A stretch of 64,000 nt of DNA from Scyliorhinus canicula (GCF_902713615.1 NC_052153.1:20723323-20787322), one strand, 5' to 3'; shown: positions 4,666 to 64,000, counted from the stretch's first letter. Numbers and translations are program-made. The notes: generated from the letters alone by a model not told the origin.

Positions 4666-5526
4666 TTCATTGTGTATGAATCCTTTCAAGACCTTGTCCC
4701 TCCCTATCTCTGTATTCTCTGACAGCCACACACCCGCAACCCACTTAAGCCGAGTTCTCCTGCCTCTGGTCCTTTTGCATTTCCATTGTCTGCAATTTCC
4801 CAATGAGGGCCATACCTCCAGCTGCCTCAGCCCCTTGCTCCGGAATACTTGCCCAAAACCCCTCTGTCTCCATTAACAGCCTTCTTAAAACCTTTTTTCA
4901 CCTAGTCCTCATATCTCCTGCTTCGACTCGAGATCCATTTGAACCTGATTCAACCTCTGTAAGGTTCCTTGGGTCATTTTCCTATTGTCAGTAGGACCTG
5001 GTATGATTGTAAATCACTCTATTCCATCCCAGAGCCTTTCCGGATGCTGGATAATTGTTGATGTTCAGACTTTTTAAGGAACTTAAATGCGACCCCTCCC
5101 TCAATCAATCAAATTTTCTTTGAAGAAAATGAAAAAAAAGCGGAAACAATTAGAGTTGCAAATATTTTTAATATTTTTGCTATTACGAGCGCGATGACAG
5201 GAACTCGAGTCGTTTATATGGACCCGACTAGAATTATTTTTCTGTGGACTAGCGAATTAATTTAATGGATTTGTTTTCCCAGCACAGAGATACCCCCTGC
5301 CGTTCTACATTCTGGGAATTTGGGGAGAGCTGAGATCATCAAATTTTCCAAACATTGTGGATAAAAAGGAACCCTGCAGCAGCTCTGTGCTTTGCTTCCC
5401 AAAATGCACCGTGAGTAGATGAAAGTCATTGGTCGGTGGCTGAATTTATAAAATGTACCCTTTTGTCTGCTTTGAGTGATTCTGAATCAACAGCTATTGA
5501 ATGCTCCTGGGATACAGTGGGCATCA

Positions 5527-5855
5527 TTATTTGATTAAGCTGCAGGCTGTGGCGATTTCCCTTGTAGTGCAACTGCTATCACAGCATTGGTCAATAATTG
5601 GAATCTGCTTCTTGATCAATTTAGTTTGGGCGAGGGGCTTTGGGAAAACAAACTGCATTGTTTGGTCCCCCTCAACCTGAGGGCCAGCAACATGATAATC
5701 AGGTTCCATCTGCTCTTCCTGGGTGTAGTCATTGCCAAACGATTGCTGTCCATCATAAAACTCATAGTGCTGAAGCCTGTCATCGCCGAACACCCTCCGA
5801 ATTTGCTCTCTGTTCATCTTGAAGTAATCATCCCTGTTTGAGATCTCTGCGGGAT
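5527..5855 (-). CDS. Relaxin/insulin-like preprohormone, coding exon 2 (C peptide + A chain)
   Basis: Acceptor ttgtttctgttccag|ATCCC (AG at 5857-5856). The phase-1 join with exon 1 stays in frame (...PGY-N-PAEISNR...). Ends KK-QIPIIDQCCDSSCTTREIATACSLIK*, the insulin-superfamily A-chain motif CC-x3-C-x8-C after a dibasic site. Full product 165 aa. Confidence 0.93.
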
Positions 5856-6183
5856 CTGGAACAGAAACAAAGTTCCATCTGTGAACGCTCAATCAATGTA
5901 TCAGCATTTTAACTCCATGTTATCATCCCAAAATGGAACATTCACCTCAGAGAGAGTTTACCCATACTTACGTCGATTTAAGTGAACTTTTTTGCCGATT
6001 TAGTTTTTGCCTATTAACCATGCAAATTATTTTCTAATGTTGGTGTTTCTGTTTTTCTATCCTATAGGATGGGCTCAATGATCCCAGCTGGGAGCCTCAT
6101 GCCAGAGGAGTTTGGAGACATTTTGGGGCTGATTCACCAGCCACTGCTCCTGTTATTGTCTATTAAGGATTATTTAATAGGAA

Positions 6184-6385: not shown

Positions 6386-7414
6386 TTTTACAAAAGGATT
6401 ATTTAATAAGGAGGCAAATAGGGGGATTTAGTAATGGAAAAGGGCAGCAGGGAATGGGCATGAATGCAATATTTATGGGGAGAAATCTGCAGCAGGACCC
6501 GTGTGCAACCATCCTGTGCCAGGGAGCAGGAGGCGTGGGTTCTGTCAATGGGGAACATGGAGGGCTTGACTGAACGGCCACATGAAATAACCTTTTTACA
6601 AAGCAGAATCAAACACAGATTTACATCAATGAAATATTCATATGACATGCTGATTTATAATGCACAAACTTCGCTAATCATATACTTAACGTAACTGTGC
6701 TCCTTCATTCTTGTTTGATTTAGTTGGCACCTGATGACGCAAGAATTTTCAAATATTGAAATGGGGTCACACTGGGAAAGGGTTTGGGAAGCACCATGGT
6801 GCAAAACAAACTGGCTCTGCTCCTGATCTGCTATTGTGCCTTGGTGGAAAATCTTTCGTGAGGCTCCCACACATTTGGCAAAGGCATGGTGGTGCAGAGG
6901 GACAAATTCCCAGTTCTCATTGAGCTTTTCAGAACTATTATTATAGGTTTTGTTCTGACATGCTCTATAACTCAGTGATAATTTCAACTCACTTGACCTG
7001 CCAGGAACTGTGCAAGTAAACTTGCGCATTCCAGAAAGTGTGCTGAATTATAGGAAAATAACGTTTAAAGCCGGGTTTAATGTGTTCTCGGTGTGCCTCC
7101 AGAGCCATTTTGCGTTTCCAACTATTTGATTAGTGTTACTCACTCCGCTGGCTGGATTGCACCTCTTCTGTCGATCAGTCCAAGTCAAACTCAATCCTGA
7201 CCCATTACCTTGTGTTGTGAATTATTAACAATGCCAGGCAAGCTCCCAGTGAGACAGCTTGGGAAGGCCTTGCTGCAGATTCCTGGGGGGCTGCCACTGC
7301 AGGACTGTCGCTACAATACTAGAGGAGGTAGCAGAGACTGATCCCTTCAAAGGAAGCTGAGGAGAGGATGTCAGTACGAGACCCTCTTCCCAAATGTAGT
7401 CCTCAGTGACATTA

Positions 7415-7763
7415 CATAGAACATAGAACATAGAACAGTACAGCACAGAACAGGCCCTTCGGCCCTCGATGTTGTGCCGAGCAATGATCACCCCACTCAA
7501 ACACACGTATCCACCCTATACCCATAACCCAACAACCCCCCCCATAACCTTACTTTTTAGGACACTACGGGCAATTTAGCATGGCCAATCCACCTAACCC
7601 GCACATCTTTGGACTGTGGGAGGAAACCGGAGCACCCGGAGGAAACCCACGCACACACGGGGAGGATGTGCAGACTCCACACAGACAGTGACCCAGCCGG
7701 GAATCGAACCTGGGACCCTGGAGCTGTGAAGCATTTATGCTAACCACCATGCTACCGTGCTGC
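7415..7763 (-). mobile_element. HE1-type SINE, full length, young
   Basis: Head plus (TTCTATG)n tail; near-identical to 12288-12640. Confidence 0.9.
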
Positions 7764-8074
7764 CTGGCAGCATTGGGAAGGGGCAGTAACTGGAGAGAAT
7801 GTAAAGAACGTCTGATCATGTCCTCTCATGTGGGACATGCACAGATTCACTTTCAACAGGACAGAGGTCAGAGGTCAGAGACAGGCACCTTATGATTTAT
7901 TCCCCTCCCTTTTCCAAAATTGCTGAGTTCAACTCACTCAGCATTATCGGGGAACTAAACCTGGAATCTACTGTTCTCTGTAATTTACCTCCTTTGCTAC
8001 TGGGCCACATTATCTTTCTTTTAAGTTTAACATTTCACATCATTTAGACTCCAAGTGGGGGGGGGGTGGTCCAC

Positions 8075-8390
8075 AATAATAATAATAATCTTTATTACTG
8101 TCACAAGTAGGCTTACATTAACACTGCAATGAAGTTACTGTGAAAAGCCCTTAGTCGCCACACTCCGGCGCCTGTTCGGGTACACAGAGGGAGAATTAGG
8201 AATGTTCAATTCACCTAACAAGCACATCTTTCGGGAATTGCGGGAGGATACCGAAACACCTGGAGGGAACCCTCGCAGACACGGGGAGAATGTGCAAACT
8301 CCGCACAGATGGTGACCCAAGCGGGAACCGAACCTGGGACCCTGGCGCTGTGGCGCAACAGTGCTAACCACTGTGCCACCGTGCCACCCT
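8075..8390 (-). mobile_element. tRNA-derived SINE
   Basis: gggtggcacggtggcacagtggttagc head, (ATT)n tail. Confidence 0.8.
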
Positions 8391-8475
8391 AGCACGGACA
8401 GCCAGTGAATAATGCCACCAGCATGGGGTTTGATTCCCCCTTTGGCTGAAGTAGACTTGGGGCCCACCTCCCCAC

Positions 8476-8705
8476 NNNNNNNNNNNNNNNNNNNNNNNNN
8501 NNNNNNNNNNNNNNNNNNNNNNNNNNNNNNNNNNNNNNNNNNNNNNNNNNNNNNNNNNNNNNNNNNNNNNNNNNNNNNNNNNNNNNNNNNNNNNNNNNNN
8601 NNNNNNNNNNNNNNNNNNNNNNNNNNNNNNNNNNNNNNNNNNNNNNNNNNNNNNNNNNNNNNNNNNNNNNNNNNNNNNNNNNNNNNNNNNNNNNNNNNNN
8701 NNNNN
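8476..8705. other. Assembly gap (230 N) inside the intron of the relaxin-like gene
   Basis: Run of N. Confidence 0.99.
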
Positions 8706-9062
8706 GGACAATCATTAAACTAAAACTATAGTGTAAAGTAACAGAATTATGCAGCTCATTTCAGAATACAAGTAATTACAATAGATTACAAAATGTAGGT
8801 CTGCCTAATTTACAGAATAGAAATGAAAGGCTGTGGTTCCATGACTTTTAAATAATGGAGGATGCTACCTGAAGGTTCAACCCCTGCATGAATATGTGAA
8901 GACTGACATTCCTTCATGATAATGAAGCTGATAAGGTCATTGTATTCCTGATGCATTGATTTATAAAATCACATCATGTTTTAATTGGAATGACAACAAT
9001 GCATTTTCGGAATCACTGACTATTTCTCTACCTTGGTCAATAGAAGGGAGGTCAATACTCAC

Positions 9063-9231
9063 TATATCCGGGATGGAGGGCTCTCTGGCTAATGCCCCTG
9101 CAGATAGTTACCAGTATTTTGACAAAACTGTGACCACAGAGCTTTGTGAATACCAGACCAGGGTTTAATGTAGAATCTGCAAAGAGTGGCAGCGAGAGCC
9201 CAGTAATCAGGACGAACACCAGACACTTCAT
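9063..9231 (-). CDS. Relaxin/insulin-like preprohormone, coding exon 1 (signal peptide + B chain + start of C peptide)
   Basis: Manual translation from ATG at 9231: MKCLVFVLITGLSLPLFA-DSTLNPGLVFTKLCGHSFVKILVTICRGISQR-ALHPGY. Hydrophobic leader, B-chain motif LCG with C-x11-C spacing, ends at the canonical donor A|GTGAGT (9062-9057), phase 1 (169 nt). Confidence 0.93.
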
Positions 9232-9304
9232 TGCACTTCGTAAACCCGAATAGCTGCTAATTCCTCTCTAGCTCGGACTTCCAGGTTTATCTGTTCCCTG
9301 CCCA

Positions 9305-9311
9305 TTTTATA
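9305..9311 (-). promoter_or_regulatory. TATA box of the relaxin-like gene
   Basis: TATAAAA on the minus strand about 75 nt upstream of the ATG, with an AGATAA (GATA-type) hexamer at 9287-9292. Confidence 0.7.
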
Positions 9312-9805
9312 GCCGTTTTGCCTCCTTACTGTGAAGTTTCATTGTTTGCCATTAACTTTTGTCCCATTTTCTGATGGCTTTTGACATTTTTCCAACACCG
9401 TAAACCCATGAATGTCTTCACTAAACGACAACTCTTTGATTAATATTTAGACTAACCAGCTTCTATCTGTAATTGATATCGAACAGGGAGCTGTAGCAGC
9501 CACAACATCAAGAAGAGTGTAGCTGTAGCAACCACAACATCAAGCTAAGGGCAGCACAAGGAAGACATTACCAATAGTTGTCAAACTGACTACAGCTTTT
9601 AACAATTAAATTGTGCCATTCTCTCCCTTCCCATGGCCTACACTTGGATTCCACTCCGAGGAAGTTGCTTCTTCACAGATGCAATAGATTTGGGTAAACT
9701 TTGCCTGTCGACAGCCACCGAGAGTTACCTTTGTAAATGTACTAATTATGTGACAAAGGAATGGTAAAACAATAATGTATATTCTTTATTAAAAGATAAA
9801 CTATA

Positions 9806-12800
9806 GATCGCGATCTACTGGCCTCATTGCGAACTTGCTCAAGTGAAACGAGGCCGGTGAATAACGGGAGAGGCCAAAAGCGAGAAGCACGCCAGGCGGC
9901 AAACCAGGATGCAACCGGCCCGCTCCTGTAGGTGAAATCGGGATCTCACTGTAGAGAGGTGAGAAACCAATTATCACCACTTAAGCCCATTTCCATATGA
10001 CTAATGAGAGCCACCCTTTATCCAACGCCCTCCCGTCAGATAATGGCCTCCCCAGCAAGTGCCGATTAGTACTCCTTTTGAAAAATGTGAACTGGGCGGA
10101 AGGGCTTCTGTGGAGAGCTGAGGAGGTGAGAAGCCATCTTGGCTCACAGGCAAAGAGTCTGGGGGTGCTGGGCTTGCTGCCCCTGTACTCAGCGGAGGGG
10201 GTGGGGGACCATCGGCTGAGGGTAGGTTGCCATCGGAAGGTGGGGGGGGGTAACCGGGAGGGGGGGGGGGGCAACCACTCATGGCACCACCATGCCAAAC
10301 CCTGGATTGTGTGTACCCATTCTGGGATCAACCCTTGCCTCTGCCCGTCTGCCTCAATGACCACCCATAACCCCCGCTGACTGCCGAGGCCTCTGGCCAT
10401 GCAGCTGACATCTAGGGAATTGGCTGCCATGGTTAAGTGAGCACTTCACTCAACCTAAGTGGATTCCCATGGGTGGGCCAGCCATGTAGCATGTGGGAAT
10501 GATTGCCTAGCATCCCAATCAGACCGTGATGCCTGCACACTGCAGCAGCCAACGTCCGAACATCCAGGAGATGGAACACAGCTCTGGCTGGAGGGTGGGT
10601 GAGTGCCACGGGGAGGGGGCCAGTGCCCTGTTAAGTTGACGTTGTGAGCGGGTGTCGGGGTACAGGGCGCGTTGCCCGCTGTGACTGGGAGTGTGTGGGC
10701 AGGGCGTTCCGGGTAGGGGGTGGGGAGGATCAGTAAGGGAATGGCGGGTCCCGGGGTGGGAGCCACCGCTATTTGTCAATGTTCCCAATGCCTTAAAGAT
10801 GTTAAATGCTATGTCAGGGATGTTAGACTCAGAGGTTGCCCCAATGGTGCTGGTGCTGCACGATGTGACCAGACACAGGAGAAGGCGTCAGCAACAGTGT
10901 CTGCAGATGTTCGAGGCAATGGCCCATGTGCCGGATTCCACCCTGAGGATCCAGGTGGCCATCAACCGAGGGAGGGACCAAGAGGATGAGTCCCACTACG
11001 GCCCAGGGTGTACAGGCATCGCTGGTCCTTTGAACAAACGACGGACAGTGCGTGCAGCAGGAGGCTCCGCCTCAAAAAGGAGACGGTGCGACACCTGTGC
11101 CATATAGTCACGGACTTGGCACCACACGGAGGAGGAGGAGGACACATGCTCCCAGTGGCCGTCGAGGTCACTGCAGCCCTGAACGTTTCTGCCATGTGAT
11201 CATTTCAGGGCTCTAGCGGGGACCTGTGTGGACCTCACAGGCCACAGCCCACAGGTGCATCCGGCAGGTCACGAATGCCCTGTATACCCGGGCGGTAGAC
11301 TACACTGTCTTTGACATGGAACAGGCTCAGCAAGATGCCTGAGCTGCAGGTTTCTCTGCCATCGCCGGGATACCCGAGGTCCGGGGAGTCATAGATGTCA
11401 TGCATGATGCCTGTACGGCGGCCGGAGACCAAAGTGGAGACTCGCTACAACGAGGCCATGCAGCCACCCGGGCTGTCCATGAGCAGTGCATCGGACTCCT
11501 CAAGATGCGGTTCCAATGCCTCGACAGCTCTGGTGGTGGACTCCAGTACACCGTCCAGAGGGTCGTCTGCTTTGTGGTGGTCTTCTGTGCCCTCCACGAC
11601 CTGGCACAGCAGCGGGACGACAAGCTGGAAGTTGGTGATGAGGAGCGTGTGGCCATCTCCGAGGCGGAGGAGGATGAGGATGATGAGGAGGCTCCAGACC
11701 GGCAGGGGCTGGAGGACAAGGCCGGGGAGGAACCTGAGACCCAGGCGGAGGCTGAGGACATGTGGCAGTGATGAGTGTCCAGCAAGCCCGGAGGGCCAAG
11801 GAGGCTCTCATATTCGCTCGCTTTGCCTTGGGCGTGGCCTGGTCCGTCTTCACAACCTTACCCACCCACCACCCTCATTTACATCCTCCCAGGATATGTG
11901 TCACATCACTCCAGGGTGCTGGGACAGTGTTTTGGCACTGTCAGCGGGTCAGTGTTGAGGACAGGGGAGGTGATGATAACCTGCAGAGAGCTAAGCGCTG
12001 GTGCTCCTCAATCTATGCCATAGTCTGACCCCTGCCTGTCTGCTGAATGCTCGCTCACACCCATCACCTGCACGTAATAATGCATTGGGGAAAAAACTGA
12101 CAGAGGTTTCCTCCTGGTTGTGTACAAGGATGTTTATTGTTCAATACAAGTCCTCTCTCTCCCAATGGGGCCGCCCCACACCCTCCCACCGCCCCAAATA
12201 TCCACTCTCCACACCCACTTTCACCCCCTACCTGCCCCATTTCCCCCCCCCCCCCACCCCCACACTTCCAGTGCCCTCAGTGATAAAACATAGAACATAG
12301 AACATAGAGCAGTACAGCACAGAACAGGCCCTTCGGCCCTCAATGTTGTGCCGAGCCATGATCACCCTACTCAAACCCACGTATCCACCCTATACCCGTA
12401 ACCCAACAACCCCCCCCTTAACCTTACTTTTATTAGGACACTACGGGCAATTTAGCATGGCCAATCCACCTAACCCGCACATCTTTGGACTGTGGGAGGA
12501 AACCGGAGCACCCGGAGGAAACCCACGCACACAGGGGGAGGACGTGCAGACTCCACACAGACAGTGACCCAGCCGGGAATCGAACCTGGGACCCTGGAGC
12601 TGTGAAGCATTTATGCTAACCACCATGCTACCCTGCTGCCCCCCTGATCCTCAATGTGCTTGGCCCTCCGAGCTCTACCACTATGTCGAGGTGTCTCCCC
12701 AGGATTCACAGCTGAGGTGCAGACAACCAGGTGCTTACCTCATCCCATGGTCTTCGATGTTCCTGGTGGATGTCCTCTGAGGGTCCTGGGGCTGGAGGCC

Positions 12801-51913: not shown

Positions 51914-52086
51914 TCAGGAATTTAAGCTGCAGGTTTGTATAGAAGACAGCAAGCAACAGGTTTCACAACAGTTTTAAAGGTATGTTGAAGTTTTCTTCCA
52001 AATTTCTTGCAATAAAATATATTTTTTCACTTCAACGATCAATAAAGTATACTTTTTTACTTGGATACAATGGTTCCGTTGTCTTT
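51914..52086 (-). pseudogene. Relaxin-like paralog, exon 2 pseudogene (A chain)
   Basis: Pyrimidine tract plus acceptor ttgtttacag|AA, phase 1, in frame to ...QEIWKK-TSTYL*NCCETCCLLSSIQTCSLNS*. KK-x7-CC spacing is as in the intact gene and CCTGCAGCTTAA is shared. Premature TAA at 51974-51976 and one codon missing between the last two cysteines. Confidence 0.75.
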
Positions 52087-52937: not shown

Positions 52938-53124
52938 GGGGTCAATTCTCCGTCGGAAGGAATCTCCATTCTGCCGGCAGCGCAACCCGCCCATGGGTTT
53001 CCCGGCGGCATGGGGTGGCCACAATGGGAAATCCCATGGGCCGGTTGCGGGAATGGAGAATCCTGCTGCCGGCGGTGACGCGCTGCCGGGGAACACGCGG
53101 CTGGGGAGGCGGAGACTTCACCCC
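52938..53124. mobile_element. Palindromic MITE
   Basis: Termini ggggtcaattctccg / cggagacttcacccc; similar element at 54670-54842. Confidence 0.7.
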
Positions 53125-53210: not shown

Positions 53211-54253
53211 GTCTGTACACTGAGGGATCTGTACACTCTGAGGGGTCTGTACACTCTGAGGGACATGTACACTCTGAGGGACATGTACACTCTGAGGGGT
53301 CTGTACACTCTGAGGAGTCTGTACACTCTGAGGGGTCTGTACACTCTGAGGGACATGTACACTCTGAGGGACATGTACACTCTGAGGGGTCTGTACACTC
53401 TGAGGAGTCTGTACACTCTGAGGGGTCTGTACACTCTGAGGAGTCTGTACACTCTGAGGGGCCTGTACACTCTGAGGGACATGTACACTCTGAGGGGTCT
53501 GTACACTCTGAGGGGTCTGTACACTCTGAGGAGTCTGTACACTCTGAGGTGTCTGTACACTCTGAGGGGCCTGTACACTCTGAGTGGTCTGTACACTCTG
53601 AGGAGTCTGTACACTCAGAGGGGCATGTACACTGTGAGGGGCATGTACACTGTGAGGGGCCTGTACACTCTGAGGGGGTCTGTACACTCTGAGGGGTCTG
53701 TACACTCTGAGGGGTCTGTACACTCTGAGGGACATGTACACTCTGAGGGACATGTACACTCTGAGGGGTCTGTACACTCTGAGGGGTCTGTATACTCTGA
53801 AGGGCCTGTACACTCTGAAGGGTCTGTACACTCGGAGGGGTCTGTACACTCTGAGGGGTCTGTACACTCTGAGGGGTCTGTACACTCTGAGGGGTCTGTA
53901 CACTCTGAGGGGTCTGTACACTCTGAGGGGTCTGTACACTCCGAGGGGTCTGTACACTCCGAGGGGTCTGTACACTCTGAGGGGCATGTACACTCTGAAG
54001 GGTCTGTACACTCTAAGTGGTCTGTATACTCTGAAGGGCCTGTACACTCTGAGTGGTCTGTACACTCGGAGGGGTCTGTACACTCGGAGGGGTCTGTACA
54101 CTCTGAGGGGCCTGTACACTGTGAGGGATCTGTGCACTCTGAGGGATCTGTACACTCTGAGGGATCTGTACACTCTGAGGGATCTGTACACTCTGAGGGA
54201 TCTGTACACTCTGAGGGGTCTGTATACTCTGAGGGACCTGTACACTCTGAGGG
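53211..54253. repeat. 18-bp minisatellite (TCTGTACACTCTGAGGGG)n, about 58 copies
   Basis: Directly visible tandem array with variant units (GGGACATGTAC, GGAGTCTGTAC, GGGCCTGTAC) and a 1-nt insertion near 53675. Confidence 0.97.
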
Positions 54254-54436
54254 ATGAGTAACTAATTCGCCCCCTCTCCCGGCAACATGTTGCCGAGCTC
54301 TTCTCTCATGAACCCTATGCTGATGTCAAAGCCTCAGTGATTTTAAGACACCAGGTGAAATAATGGGAGAGGAATAGGTAAACCTAAAAGTGAAAGCAAG
54401 AGACGAAATAGCGGAGATTCAGAACTGTGAAGCGAA

Positions 54437-54607
54437 TTGAAGTACTTGGTGTTCATTCTGGTAATCAGACAGTTCCTGCTCTTTACAGATTCTGCTGAAG
54501 TTGACCCTGGTGAGATATTCTTAAAGCTCTGATTTCATAAACCTGCGATACAAATATTGCGTATCTGCAGGGTCAGCGGTTGGAGATCACTCCAGCTGCA
54601 GCATATA
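54437..54607 (+). pseudogene. Relaxin-like paralog, exon 1 pseudogene (copy 2)
   Basis: Translates LKYLVFILVIRQFLLFTDSAEVDPGEIFLKL*FHKPAIQILRICRVSGWRSLQLQHI then GTGAGT. The start codon is TTG, the first B-chain Cys is TGA (54530-54532), the donor is phase 0, and the TATA box is degraded. The 5'UTR (54355-54436) and intron (54608-54652, 54855-55140) align to the reverse complement of 9232-9312, 9018-9062 and 8710-8995. Confidence 0.9.
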
Positions 54608-55344
54608 GTGAGTGTTGACCTACCTTCTATTGACCAAGACAGAGAGATAGTCGTTGGTGCCGTGCAAGTTGGGCGGTATCCTCCGTTTCACCGGCAGCGC
54701 ACTCACGCCCACGGATTTACCGACGGCGTGGGGGTACCCACAATGGAAAACCCATTGGCCGGCTGCCGGGAAGGAGGATCCCACTGTTGGCGGGAGCGTG
54801 CCGTGCCAGAAAATGGGTGTGGCGGGACCGAGAATCCCACCCGTCACGTTTACATGTCATTCCTGTTAAAACGTGATGCAATTTTATATATCAATACATC
54901 AGGAATATAATGACCTTATCAGCTTAATTATCACGTAGGAATGTTTTCATATATTCATGCAGGGGTTGAACCATCAGGCAGCATCCTCCATTATTTGAGA
55001 GTCACAGAACCATGGCCTTTGATTTCTAGGTTAATTAGGTAGATCTACATTTTGCAATCTATTGTAATTATTTGTATTCTGAAATGAGTTGCATTGTGCA
55101 ATCATCCTGTTACTTTCTACTTCTGTTTTAATTTAATGATCATCCAGAGTTATGTCATGAATAATGATTACTTGTTTTATACATGTCATCAAGCCATGAT
55201 GATTTTTCAGTAAACCAGTCATCTATCGGTCCATCCATCCATCTCTCTGTCTATCCCGTGACTTCACTATGGGGCAGGGTGGGGGTGCTACCTCAGGCAA
55301 AGGGGAATCATTGGCATTATTCTAAGCCACACACTAGTCGTCTG

Positions 55345-56565
55345 AGTCGTAGAGTTTTATAGCACAGAAAGAGGCCCTTCGGCCCATCGTGTCTGTGACG
55401 GCCATCAAGCACCTATCTTCTCTAATCCTATTTTCCAGCACTTGGTTTGAAGCCTTGTGTGCTATGGTGTTTCCATGCTCATCTAAATGCTTCTGAAATG
55501 CTGTGAGGGTTCTGTCTCTATCACCCTTTCAGGCAGTGAGTTTTTCCTTAAATCCTCTCTGAATCTCCTGTCCATTACCTTAAGTTGAGCCCTCAACTAA
55601 GGGGAAAGGTCTCTTCTTATCTATCCTGGTATCTGATGACCCAAGAATGATCAAATATTGAAATGGGATCACATTTTAGAAGAGTTTGAGACATGATACA
55701 AAACAAACAGGGTCCGCTTCTGTCGCTCTACTGTGCACAGTGGCACAGTGATTAGCGCCGCTGCCTCACAGCGCCAGGGACCCGAGTTCAATTCCGGCCT
55801 TGAGTGAGTGTGTGGAGTTTGTACATTCTCTGCATGTCTGCGTGGGTTTCCTCCGGGTGCTGCTGTTTCCTCCCACAATCTAAAGATGTGCAGGTTAGGT
55901 GGATTGGCCATGCTAAATTGTCCCTTAGTGTCCAAAGATATGTTGGTTAGGTGGGTTTACGGGGATAGGACGGGGGGAGTGAGTCAAAGTGCGGTGCTCT
56001 TTCAGAGGGTGAGTGCCGACTTGATGGGCTGAATGGCCTCCTTCTGCACTGTAGTGATTCTGAGATTGCGTACTTTGGTGGAAAATCTTCAGTGAGGTTT
56101 CCACACATCTGGTAAAGTTATAATGGCGCTGAGGGAACAACTCCCTGCAAATTCTCATTGAGTCTTTCAGCACTATTATTAAAAGCAACATCCTGGTGAA
56201 TCTCCTCTGCACCCTTTCTGCTGCAATCAGCTCCTTCCTATTGTGTGGTGACCAGAACTGCCCACAATACTCTAGCTGTGGATATATGAGCAGTTTATAT
56301 AGCTCCATCACACCCTCTCTGCTCTTGTATTCTTTGTGTCGGCTAATAAATCCTGTCTAATCCTGTTAGAATTTTATACGTTTCTACGAGACCCCCTCTC
56401 ACTTTTCTAAACTGCAATGAATATAATCCTAACTGACTTAGTCTCTCCTCGTACAACAGTCCCCTCATCCCAGGAACCAGCCTGGCAAACCTTCGCTGCA
56501 CTCCCTCCACAGCAAGAACATCCTTCCCCAGATAAGAACATCAAAACTGCACACAATACTCCAGG
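55345..56565 (-). mobile_element. CR1 3' fragments (55345-55628, 56184-56565) and an HE1 SINE (55733-56065, +)
   Basis: CR1 tail and LEYCGQFWSPH..ERVQRRFTRML motif; SINE head cacagtggcacagtgattagc. Confidence 0.85.
55632..56180. other. Paralogous intron segment homologous to 6731-6943, split by a SINE
   Basis: ctgatgac(g/c)caagaat..tcaaatattgaaatggg and ttggtggaaaatctt..gtgagg...ccacacat..ttctcattgag..tttcag..ctattatt match 6731-6943 in direct orientation. Confidence 0.75.
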
Positions 56566-57144
56566 TATCACAGAGCCTTGAAGTTTCCAGGTTCAGTCCT
56601 CAGTCAGAACTCAGCCAATTAGTGAGATACAATTGGCCTCAACAACTTTGGAAAAGAGAGGGAAAAAGTTCCTGCCCCTGTAACTCCTGTTGAAAGTGAG
56701 TCTGTACATGTCCCACATGAGGATATGATCAAATTTTTTTGCATCCACCCCATTTGCTACCCCTTCCTGGGTCTGCCATGTAATGACACTGAGGACCACA
56801 ATGGAGAAGAGGGCTGCGTACTGACATTCTCTCCTCAGCTTCTGTGGTAATGCGGCCCCTTTAAGGGGCGAGCCCTCACAGTCCATGTGACCAGCTTGGG
56901 GCCAATCGTGATGGAGCGCACAAACCCTGACCAATGGAGAGAAAGCTTGGGGCACTTGGAGCAGGAGCCCAGACAGTGTGCACCCTGGAACCAGAGCATT
57001 AAGACCTAGTCAATGTTGCTCTGTGCCTGGATATTGTTGTCTTTGCCTATTGTTAATAAACCTCCTTTATTGGTGCTGGATGTCTCCAATTTATTATTTT
57101 GATCCACCACTTTGATCGATCGCTTATCCTCAGTGGTTTGGGAT

Positions 57145-61651: not shown

Positions 61652-64000
61652 TAAGCTTAGAGTGTAACTTGAAAACAGGTGACATAGTGGTGGTGTGGTA
61701 GAAGCCTTGCCCATTGAAGACATTCAATTAATTCTAAGGAATGGTATTACATGATCACTTGTGGTTTTAAAAATCGGGAAACAGGCACCATGGTTGCTGA
61801 GGAGAGAGGGGGGTATGAAAGGTGTCCAACATCGCTGCAGTGTGCTGACAGTTGTGCCGCTGGCCGAGGGAACTCCACCAGGGTCGGCGGGGGACGGCCA
61901 GAAGGTGGGTCATGGGGTGGGGGTGGACGGACATGGAACACCATTACCGCTGTCTGCAAGACAGCCATGTGACTGCGCGCGTCGCTGACTGCCCACTGTA
62001 AGCTTAATGCCACGGGCCGTATGGTTGTCCCCCCCAGGCCACCCCACCAGTACCCTCTGGCCCCCGCCAACCCATCAATGGGCTGGGCGCAGTCCAGCGC
62101 AAACAGTGTCAGCTTGTTGGCTGGGATGAGTGTGTGTGGTGAGTGGAGTGCAAATATGCGGCTGCAGCTTGTCAGACTCGAGTGCCAGTCCTGACCCCAG
62201 CAAAGCTGGTTACCTTTCCCATTTGAATCAATCGTGTTCCACGTGACCCAGGTGCTAGTCCATTAATGGTGGTTGAATTGCTCCGGGTCCGGCACCCATT
62301 TTGTTGTCGTGGAATTCTACCGATTCGGTCCCGGCGTCAGCACTTAGTCCCTGAAACGGATAATCCCGCCAAAGGTGTTTGGGAGGAAGGACGCGCCTGC
62401 AACTGTTCAAAGGCTCATGGACAGAGCGAATCGAGGATGGAGTCACTGTGCCGTCGACAATAATGACTTAGTGGTGTTCAGCGCGAAGTGGGAAGAGCAC
62501 CTGCGCCACATAAAGGAACAGTTTGACCGCTTAGAAGAAGATAATTCGGTGAGAAACCAGACAAAAAGAAAATTGGCTGCGGTCCAAACTTTCATATCTG
62601 GGGCACACAGTGGGACATGGTCAAAGAGCACAGCAAGATGCAAATTTACAGGCCACGTGGCACTTCCTGGAACCCACCACCAGGAAGGAAACTTTACATC
62701 TGGGGCTGGCGTTACAGCATTGAGATTTAAGTTGCCAACAAGCTAGCAGAGACAATCAGAGATACGCACCAGAATCACTTCAAAGTTTATGGAGACATTT
62801 CAAGATTGGGTCATTTGGTCAATCTATTGCAACCGTAATCTTGCATTCGGCTGCGAGAGATCATTGCGGATGCTTTACGCCGAGTATGAAGAAACTTCTG
62901 GGAACAGTGGGGAACTTTCTGGGGTATTTTTCTCTGTTAATACATGCTTTTGAGTTTTGTAATATGTAAGAAGATGGAACTAAAAAGAGAAGGGTTGAGA
63001 AATGAAAGTCTCTCAACTTTAAGACATTTCATTTTTATAAAGCGGGGGGGCGGAGGGGGGGAAATGTCATGAACCTTCCTGGAGACAGCTGTAGACAGTG
63101 TTCAACAGGGCCTCAATTGGTATGTGCTTCCCGGTAGCAAGAGTACAACGGCAGTTTAGATAATAATCGAGCATGAACGGCATATCGAGGAGAAACAGAT
63201 TATAGACAATTGGGAAGGTCCCTGAATTAAACATATAGTAATGTATAGCCAAGGAGGTAGATAGGGACAATCAGCTGAACACACAGAAGGGATAATCAAA
63301 GAATCACGAAGGAGGGGTTATTGGGTTACGGGGATGGGGTGGAAGTGAGGGCTTAAGTGGGTCGGTGCAGACTCGATGGGCCGAATGGCCTCCTTCTGCA
63401 CTGTATGTTCTATGTATAATTGCCAAACACTGAGAAGGGAGGAAGGGCAGTTACCATCCAGCTCTCTCAGAAAGCAGACAGGCCAATGTCCAGCCAGCGA
63501 GCTGAAGGTCAAGTTTACAGCAAACAAGCTTCTAAGTCTTGGAGCAAAGGCAGTGCAGAGAATGTTCGGACCAGCAGTTTTAAAATATCTTCGCTGGAGA
63601 AGGAAAAGAGGGTTCCCAGATTTGAGTGTCATCGTGTATTGTGTGGCAACTAAAGCTGGTTATTCAATTCGAATGTTGTTTGGGGAACAGGAGAAGTCTT
63701 ATAAAGTTAATGTAACAAGGGGTGCAATCTACATAAACGGTGTGTAGTTAATAATTCATACATCTTAAATTGCATGAGAGATCCAACATCACAATAGGTT
63801 TGTAAACTGGGTTAGTTTGAAGCAGCAGACCCCATAACCAGTTCCGGTGAAGGATCTGAAGCTTCTCGGACTGTTACTCTCTTGCTGATTTAACGAGGAG
63901 TGCATGTGGCCAGGTGGAAGATCTGAACAAGTTCACTTTGTGAAGGGAAAATTAACAATGGTGATGTCATCAATCAGTTGATTCACTGATGCGGAGATGC

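Follow-up and report, generated by a model that had tools for sequence, protein, structure and literature searches.

Gene A and copy B at the locus

We analysed 64,000 nt of the Scyliorhinus canicula genome (GCF_902713615.1 NC_052153.1:20723323-20787322), a stretch called the window below. Exon 1 of a relaxin/insulin-like gene occurs in it twice, in opposite orientations: in an intact gene on the minus strand (gene A) and in a truncated pseudogene on the plus strand (copy B). No additional exon 1 copies were found within the 64-kb window. Between the two copies, exon 1 is more diverged than the intron that follows it. An earlier prediction made from the window's sequence (the original prediction) had described this contrast at 54437-55140, and had read it as adaptive diversification of the hormone. 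That stretch is the pseudogene, the intact gene being the minus-strand copy (exon 1 9231-9063, exon 2 5855-5527). The features compared are listed here; organism C is a close relative whose sequences were mapped to both copies.

9232-9311, minus strand: gene A core promoter and 5' untranslated region (5'UTR); TATAAAA at about 9308-9302; homology with copy B is first detectable here
9063-9231, minus strand: gene A exon 1 coding sequence (CDS); signal peptide, B chain with C-x11-C, start of the C-peptide; ends in phase 1
7353-9062, minus strand: gene A intron 1, 5' part homologous to copy B; 80-91% identity, broken by an N run and by insertions of short interspersed nuclear elements
8476-8705, no strand: run of 230 N in the gene A intron; excluded from every count and from read mapping
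5527-5855, minus strand: gene A exon 2 CDS; C-peptide, KK site, A chain with CC-x3-C-x8-C, stop TAA
54357-54436, plus strand: copy B core promoter and 5'UTR remnant, by alignment to gene A; TATA box degraded
54437-54607, plus strand: copy B exon 1 remnant; ATG>TTG; Cys32 TGT>TGA (54530-54532); a 3-nt deletion, a 3-nt insertion and 2 extra nt near the 3' end
54608-56842, plus strand: copy B intron homologue, by alignment to the gene A intron

Joining the gene A exons across the single 3.2-kb intron (ATG at 9231; donor GTGAGT at 9062; donor junction 9063/9062 and acceptor junction 5856/5855, phase 1) gave one open reading frame of 165 codons. The precursor of 165 residues has a signal peptide, the B chain CGHSFVKILVTIC, a long C-peptide, a KK site and the A chain CCDSSCTTREIATAC, with the cysteine framework of the insulin/relaxin superfamily (PF00049) behind the signal peptide. 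Exon 2 alone matched the Pfam Insulin profile with 19.8 bits (E 0.0016; gathering cut-off 23), and exon 1 alone gave no match in the Pfam profile search. The intron lies within the C-peptide coding region, and a single intron at this place is the usual structure of relaxin-family genes.

The best solved relative of the gene A B chain was that of human INSL3 (2k6u_B, E 0.0027), with 12 of 18 helix residues the same (11 listed as identities in the alignment line). Two sets of residues, His/Arg/Val/Trp in INSL3 and the cassette RxxxRxxI/V in relaxins, are what we take to be the receptor-binding residues of the B chain. The relaxin cassette was not found in the gene A B chain, which has HxxxKxxV instead, and the INSL3 set is incomplete there, with Gln in place of the tail Trp. 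This position (C-x4-W) is Gln in the intact gene of both S. canicula and organism C, and Trp in the pseudogene, in other family members and in INSL3.

Assemblies of RNA-like S. canicula runs (39-300 Mb, three studies) contained 69-98% of the words sampled from exon 2 (window 5380-5860), and just 0-19% of those sampled from gene A exon 1 and intron. The word content of these runs suggests that gene A is expressed as a spliced transcript. Upstream of gene A, positions 9316-9484 were 68% identical to 9590-9757 of the Chiloscyllium punctatum locus L001 (E 8e-9), and the first 18 coding nt were identical. This likeness suggests that the promoter and start region are conserved across the shark family.

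Copy B retains the B-chain C-x11-C spacing (the first Cys now being TGA), C-x4-W and the hydrophobic spacing. Its exon 2 was not found downstream as far as 64000 by tblastn, motif scan or local DNA alignment.

Divergence of exon 1, 5'UTR and intron

The counts that came with the original prediction were reproduced exactly for the first 45 intron nt (40/45 identical), for 54890-54939 against the reverse complement of 8911-8960 (45/50), for the first 10 signal-peptide codons (20/30) and, ungapped, for the 10 codons after the first B-chain Cys (12/30). With a one-codon shift the helix gave 11/27, and not about 14/27. An identity of ~25% is the random expectation for these counts.

In a full MAFFT alignment, the exon 1 CDS of A and B was identical at 108/166 positions (65.1%) and the intron at 289/337 (85.8%; 83% over the first 54 nt, 86% over the next 283 nt), a difference with a Fisher p of 2.1e-7. 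The helix between the B-chain cysteines was 47% identical (17/36). The 5'UTR and core promoter (A 9232-9311, B 54357-54436), aligned without gaps, reached 66% (53/80, 27 mismatches), and the signal-peptide core was as diverged as the hormone region. No A/B homology was found upstream of 9312, where a forced alignment gave 45%. Farther in, as far as A 7353 / B 56842, three collinear intron pieces had identities of 91% over 35 nt, 80% over 146 nt and 86% over 65 nt. The intron is ~85% identical evenly across ~1.7 kb (alignable pieces 80-91%), and the 5' end is the outlier. At A 7353 / B 56842 the homology stops sharply, with unrelated unique DNA past that point in both copies; no repeat anchors were found at this end.

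The predicted contrast thus stood (65.1% vs 85.8%). Its low block is not the exon or the helix as such: it comprises the core promoter, the 5'UTR and about the first 45 codons. The excess in the helix was not significant against the remaining 5' segment (Fisher p~0.07, orthologue-corrected) or against the 5'UTR (p~0.13), both being our estimates from counts.

A single change-point test placed a step in mismatch density with a maximum chi-square of 35.6, reached by 0 of 2000 permutations. Mismatch was 35% left of the break (241 columns) and 14% right of it (355 columns). Without correction the best break was A 9068/9067 (2-lnL interval 9087-9061). We then removed lineage-specific changes, using the organism C sequences, which gave the following interval.

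9079-9108, minus strand: support interval of the step, orthologue-corrected; best break after 9086; mismatch falls from ~33% to ~11%; around Cys44 to codon 51

The corrected interval lies within exon 1 and leaves the splice junction outside. Codons 43-57 are 84% identical, which is intron-like. Within the 5' segment we found no patchiness of mismatches (runs z -0.57; 31 adjacent mismatch pairs vs 29.6 expected). The step is independent of functional site classes, as a mosaic made by gene conversion would have it: 5'UTR, all codon positions and synonymous sites are all high. The intron had 2.2 transitions per transversion and the 5' segment ~1.0, the latter fitting a deeper divergence.

Site classes and selection tests

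The excess was not restricted to sites that change the protein. Mismatches in the 5'UTR (27/80) exceeded those in the intron (48/337) with p=1e-4. At codon positions 1, 2 and 3 there were 21, 16 and 18 mismatches in 51 codons, and the third positions alone (18/51) exceeded the intron with p=6e-4. As the excess is carried by silent sites and untranslated sequence too, selection on the protein cannot produce that part of it, and the intron is not a valid neutral yardstick for exon 1.

Synonymous (dS) and non-synonymous (dN) divergence between A and B led to the same picture. By NG86, exon 1 had dS 0.60, dN 0.46 and dN/dS (omega) 0.76; the B chain only had dS 0.47, dN 0.56 and omega 1.2, which was not significant (Fisher p=0.8). 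Pairwise maximum likelihood (ML; GY94-F3x4) gave dS 0.48, dN 0.60 and omega 1.25, and omega=1 was not rejected (2dlnL 0.28). With dS fixed at the intron K of 0.155, an omega of 4.3 was required, and this model was rejected (2dlnL 8.4, p=0.004).

Accelerated evolution of a gene family calls for exons more diverged than introns between paralogues, dN/dS significantly above 1 and untranslated regions as conserved as introns. The exon excess was found. An omega significantly above 1 was found neither between the paralogues nor between gene A orthologues (0.5-1.0), and the 5'UTR was 66% identical vs 86% in the intron (p=1e-4). The contrast itself is genuine, with solid statistics behind it; taken as a mark of adaptive evolution it fails on grounds that the original prediction had itself named as refuting, namely dN/dS at or below 1 across intact family members and conversion tracts limited to the intron. 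With omega near 1 and a similar tract that is essentially intron-limited, the adaptive reading is weakened. Diversification at the receptor-facing helix in particular was not upheld: 5'UTR and third positions are equally diverged, and the helix of the intact gene is conserved. Gene conversion, which had been put forward as the alternative, was rightly named and fits the step inside exon 1.

Orthologous copies in organism C

Organism C contigs, drawn from three runs of two studies, were mapped to gene A and copy B at 80% likeness. Orthologue counts were taken solely where one contig made up the whole depth, and the difference tables are incomplete and blind within repeats.

For gene A, one 604-nt contig covered 8902-9509. 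Exon 1 had 10 differences in 169 nt, of which six were non-synonymous (G25D, T29K, V41I, I47S, S48G and A51S) and four synonymous, two of these polymorphic. The helix had a single conservative change, V41I. The 90 nt of promoter and 5'UTR had one substitution and a 1-nt deletion (1/80 in the aligned stretch), and the intron had 11 differences in 161 nt, or ~16/357 for the whole block. Exon 1 of gene A is no more diverged than its intron between these species. Four derived substitutions of the S. canicula lineage stand within 14 nt at 9079-9092 (codons 47-51; I47, S48, A51; Poisson p=0.0015), where organism C and the pseudogene both retain S-G...S.

For copy B, a 335-nt contig spanned 54480-54742 with 7 differences in 128 exon nt and 1 in 54 intron nt, and a second contig had ~18 differences in 258 unique intron nt. 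The copy B exon has therefore changed at the neutral rate (5.5% vs ~7% in the intron). Changes private to the S. canicula genome are GGT>TTT (54533-54534, codon 33), CTT>CCT and CGG>CAG. No difference was listed at the TGA, and we read this stop as common to both species. The 335-nt contig aligned from 54480 onward only, its first 72 nt being unlike 54408-54479, which suggests a structural difference or an indel between the species near 54480.

Three intron sites (8873, 8896 and 8901) were checked by hand in the B-type contig of organism C, and all have the state specific to copy B. The intron copies group by copy, and not by species, across this one species split. Since both organism C copies have copy-specific states, the duplicates and their intron similarity predate the split, with no homogenisation since. 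Any conversion is thus older than the organism C split. Neither exon 1 has evolved faster than neutral since then, a period of ~40% of the time since the last common ancestor of the intron copies.

A ~90-nt piece of the conserved intron block (8750-8837; 55038-55085) had 12-18 organism C contigs per run, and its neighbours 1-2. This piece could be either a low-copy dispersed repeat or a segment common to more introns of the family.

The divergent copy and the shark family

The C. punctatum homologue (P0008, locus L001) served as outgroup. Polarised by this gene, exon 1 had 28 B-derived and 14 A-derived changes (p=0.04), and the signal-peptide DNA of gene A was 70% identical to the Chiloscyllium gene and 67% to copy B. 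Copy B is the divergent copy; the gene A helix, matching that of human INSL3, is the conserved one. The intron of the Chiloscyllium homologue was unalignable past ~40 nt.

An exhaustive HMMER search found five shark homologues: one from C. punctatum, three from Scyliorhinus torazame (P0001, P0003 and P0006) and one from a run assembly. A word-indexed protein search with exon 2 as query found nothing. P0003 and P0006 were attributed to S. torazame by their source names, and P0001 by lying on the same 275-Mb contig as P0006 (GCA_047496885.1). The gene models of P0001 (82 kb) and P0006 (234 kb) look like models fused across a tandem family cluster; P0006 has four C-x11-C B-chain-like motifs and a precomputed PF00049 hit. 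The nearest full-length relatives are uncharacterised shark proteins.

Mean identity among five family members was 43% over the first 14 signal-peptide residues, 19% over the non-Cys residues of the B chain and 25% over those of the A chain. The family thus includes a multi-paralogue cluster with a hypervariable B chain, which offers possible conversion partners. The exon 1 peptide of gene A scored 102 against P0003 and 69-90 against copy B. No sign of a P0003-like donor for the private residues of copy B was seen in a hand comparison of the aligned peptides.

Repeats and rejected candidates around copy B

Copy B lacks the upstream region that gene A has in common with the Chiloscyllium gene. 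A minisatellite adjoins it, ending ~100 nt upstream of the promoter remnant, and a high-copy repeat lies in its intron.

53211-54253, strand not assigned: minisatellite, 58 copies of the 18-nt unit GTCTGTACACTCTGAGGG, 90% matches
54662-54853, plus strand: high-copy GC-rich repeat in the copy B intron; gap in gene A; depth of tens of thousands in organism C

An organism C contig over 54661/54662 (ending at ~54742-54750) runs from unique copy B sequence into this repeat. Further copies of the very high-copy GC-rich repeat were seen at 52974-53075 and ~9806-10000.

Two candidates for a missing second exon were rejected. A QCADSC match at 61817-61879 was weak and taken as noise. At 51923-51997 (minus strand), the translation NCCETCCLLSSIQTCSLNS up to a stop was considered as an A-chain exon; it has an in-frame stop just before CC and non-standard spacing. 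Its likeness to gene A exon 2 was at the level of chance (tblastn E 0.72; local DNA score 12, with shuffles averaging 10.7 and reaching 16.5). An inversion scenario tying 51923-51997 to copy B was dropped because this candidate is statistically unsupported.

Origin of the contrast

We give about even credence to the A/B pair being a mosaic of two segment ages, made by gene conversion or recombination within a multi-paralogue cluster. The 5' segment (core promoter, 5'UTR and ~first 45 codons) and the 3' segment (the final ~12-14 exon 1 codons together with 1.7 kb or more of intron) would then not have one common history. The 3' segment has a K of ~0.155, roughly twice the depth of the organism C split; about three times this K is reached by every site class of the 5' segment (dS 0.48, 5'UTR K 0.45). 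Since the step is seen in every site class and falls within the exon, differing segment ages are the simplest account; the exon would be more diverged than the intron because of its ancestry, and not because of faster protein evolution.

The discordance would stem from gene conversion or non-allelic recombination among relaxin/insulin-like paralogues, in one of two ways. Either an old paralogue pair had its intron overwritten from a break inside exon 1, or a young 2-kb partial inverted duplicate later had its exon 1 and 5'UTR part overwritten from a distant paralogue. Distant paralogues are homologous in the exon 1 and 5'UTR part alone, so the second variant would explain why the excess ends near the end of the exon. 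The conversion event would have preceded the organism C split, with the copy B stop codon already present by then, and both copies have since changed at or below the neutral rate.

Several observations weigh against a mosaic. The uncorrected break interval (9087-9061) takes in the exon-intron junction, as a coding-specific process predicts, and the sharp end of homology (A 7353 / B 56842) is compatible with a plain partial duplication, which alone predicts uniform divergence. Codons with the same amino acid in A and B show 2 synonymous differences at ~16 sites, which is intron-like, and their four-fold sites are 9/9 identical; such silent-site identity under 35% divergence has p~0.03-0.045. 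In an old comparison, that of gene A with the Chiloscyllium gene, 10 of 19 such codons have changed by our reading of the alignment. Mismatches are also structured by codon. In the true frame (9063-9231 vs 54437-54607), 19 codons have no mismatch, 9 have one, 23 have two and none has three, vs 15, 18, 11 and 4 and 17, 14, 13 and 4 in the two off-frames (permutation p<5e-5). The changed codons hold at least 10 unambiguous synonymous third-position changes, with ~13/20 synonymous differences vs 2/16 in the conserved codons, and 23 of the 32 carry exactly two changes. The silent-site and codon patterns speak for an exon partly as young as the intron, with differences shaped by selection at the protein level. 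The data consist of two sequences and partial orthologues; a donor paralogue or a third alignable intron would be needed for tree incongruence. Neither a mosaic nor acceleration, each taken as a simple model, predicts both the silent-site pattern and the codon structure.

Episodic acceleration is the reading of the original prediction. A and B would be as old as their intron, diversifying selection having replaced signal-peptide and B-chain codons while B was functional, before B died. Such a course fits a dN of 0.46-0.60, 3-4 times the intron K, with the omega of 4.3 obtained if dS equals the intron value, and it fits the frame-dependent mismatches and the intron-like silent sites of unchanged codons. 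Copy B also still has the framework of a working B chain, and the family is far less conserved between the B-chain cysteines than in the signal peptide. We nevertheless regard it as rather unlikely. The 5'UTR is equally diverged (34%), as is the signal-peptide core, the changed codons have silent changes in number, and the free ML omega is near 1, with an intron-like dS rejected. The gene A helix is conserved against human INSL3 and has one change between the shark species, and its orthologues show no acceleration. An omega of at least 4 over most of an exon within a short interval would be extreme, and if B arose as the present 2-kb fragment, exon 2 was never there and selection on B was impossible. 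A more speculative form is that shark relaxin/INSL-like paralogues diversify like cone-snail toxins: signal-peptide, cysteine and other framework codons, including their silent sites, and introns would be near-fixed, and B-chain and neighbouring codons replaced wholesale by a codon-aware process combining diversifying selection with targeted or multinucleotide mutation. This is proposed because of the frame-specific doublets, the 2/16 vs ~13/20 synonymous contrast and the 19% helix identity, and we hold it to be a long shot.

Mutation alone might have scrambled short patches at the 5' end of B, through clustered multinucleotide changes, ASSET-like segment replacement or mutagenic recombination beside the minisatellite, the rest being young. 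A tandem GG>TT arose in copy B after the species split (54533-54534), gene A codons 47-51 hold the cluster described above, 58 repeat units end close upstream of copy B, doublets predominate among changed codons and B-derived changes are twice the A-derived ones (28 to 14). Against this, mismatches in the 5' segment are unclustered, the doublets are specific to the reading frame, which a frame-blind process does not predict, and the copy B exon has been at the neutral rate since the split; we think such an origin improbable. A regulatory element or RNA in the intron under purifying selection, with exon 1 giving the true, older neutral distance, is very improbable. The gene A intron differs by ~4.5% between species vs an inferred ~12% upstream of 9321, where the sequence is partly repetitive, and the ~90-nt piece at 8750-8837 recurs in ~12-20 organism C contigs. 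But the pseudogene intron differs by ~7%, near the 4.5-6.8% of gene A, the likeness spans all alignable intron over 1.7 kb and not one discrete element, no Rfam family came near threshold in the intron, the Chiloscyllium intron is unalignable beyond ~40 nt and a dead, truncated copy has no obvious need of an intronic element. An artefact of alignment, or chance, deserves almost no credence. Two compensating codon indels would raise helix identity from ~52% to ~67% (hand count), but no gaps are needed to align the 5'UTR and most of the exon, the register of the helix is fixed by the C-x11-C spacing, and neither the Fisher test (p=2e-7) nor the change-point permutations (0/2000) leave room for chance.

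Divergence higher in exons than in introns is often taken as a quick signature of adaptation, and needs a check of whether silent sites and untranslated sequence show the excess too. At this locus the signal would mostly reflect a mosaic history in a birth-and-death cluster. The cluster belongs to a poorly described shark family of relaxin/INSL3-like hormones, conserved in the signal peptide and hypervariable in the B chain. In this family gene A, apparently the expressed member, has lost the presumed receptor-binding Trp that its dead neighbour kept. Chromosome-level shark assemblies make selection vs conversion in this family directly testable.

Comparison with known systems

The relaxin/INSL family of the insulin superfamily is known for its high sequence variability (PMC551602; PMC2805637). 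Gene A resembles it in having two exons with the intron in the C-peptide, the C-x11-C and CC-x3-C-x8-C frameworks, an INSL3-like B chain and lineage-specific paralogues. It differs in HxxxKxxV in place of RxxxRxxI/V, and in its Gln at the C-x4-W Trp that the pseudogene kept.

In toxin families, untranslated regions are as conserved as introns, and dN/dS is at least 1 across many intact members. Accelerated evolution with introns more conserved than exons was reportedly described by Nakashima et al. (1993/1995) for PLA2 genes and, it is said, by Conticello et al. (2001) for conopeptides. The A/B pair is like them in that exons exceed introns in divergence, exonic synonymous divergence is several times that of the intron, a conserved signal peptide precedes a mature peptide that is hypervariable across the family, and codons are either invariant or multiply substituted. 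It differs in that divergence of its 5'UTR equals that of the CDS, omega does not differ from 1, the intact helix is conserved and the comparison is of one gene-pseudogene pair of a hormone. The same likeness extends to the venom genes of the habu (PMC6062510) and to ASSET segment switching (PMC2711939), where accelerated evolution of a toxin family also left introns more conserved than exons.

The pair of primate L/M opsin genes, a gene-conversion mosaic with a 'peak of divergence', is the nearest parallel in the literature. There, exon divergence exceeds that of the flanking introns, and so does divergence at synonymous sites, as conversion homogenises the introns and the functional exon stays distinct (PMC3213168; review PMC3924837). 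The likeness lies in a paralogue exon significantly more diverged than its intron, with synonymous sites above the intron as well. Opsin introns group by species, the mark of repeated recent conversion, whereas the shark introns group by copy across one split, so that any conversion is single or old. In the shark pair, moreover, one partner is a truncated pseudogene, the diverged block includes promoter and 5'UTR, and the pattern is known from two copies and not from a multi-sequence test of the GENECONV type. The locus is best filed beside the opsins as another mosaic history of paralogues, in a birth-and-death cluster of hormone genes, with a codon-level pattern that this history leaves unexplained.

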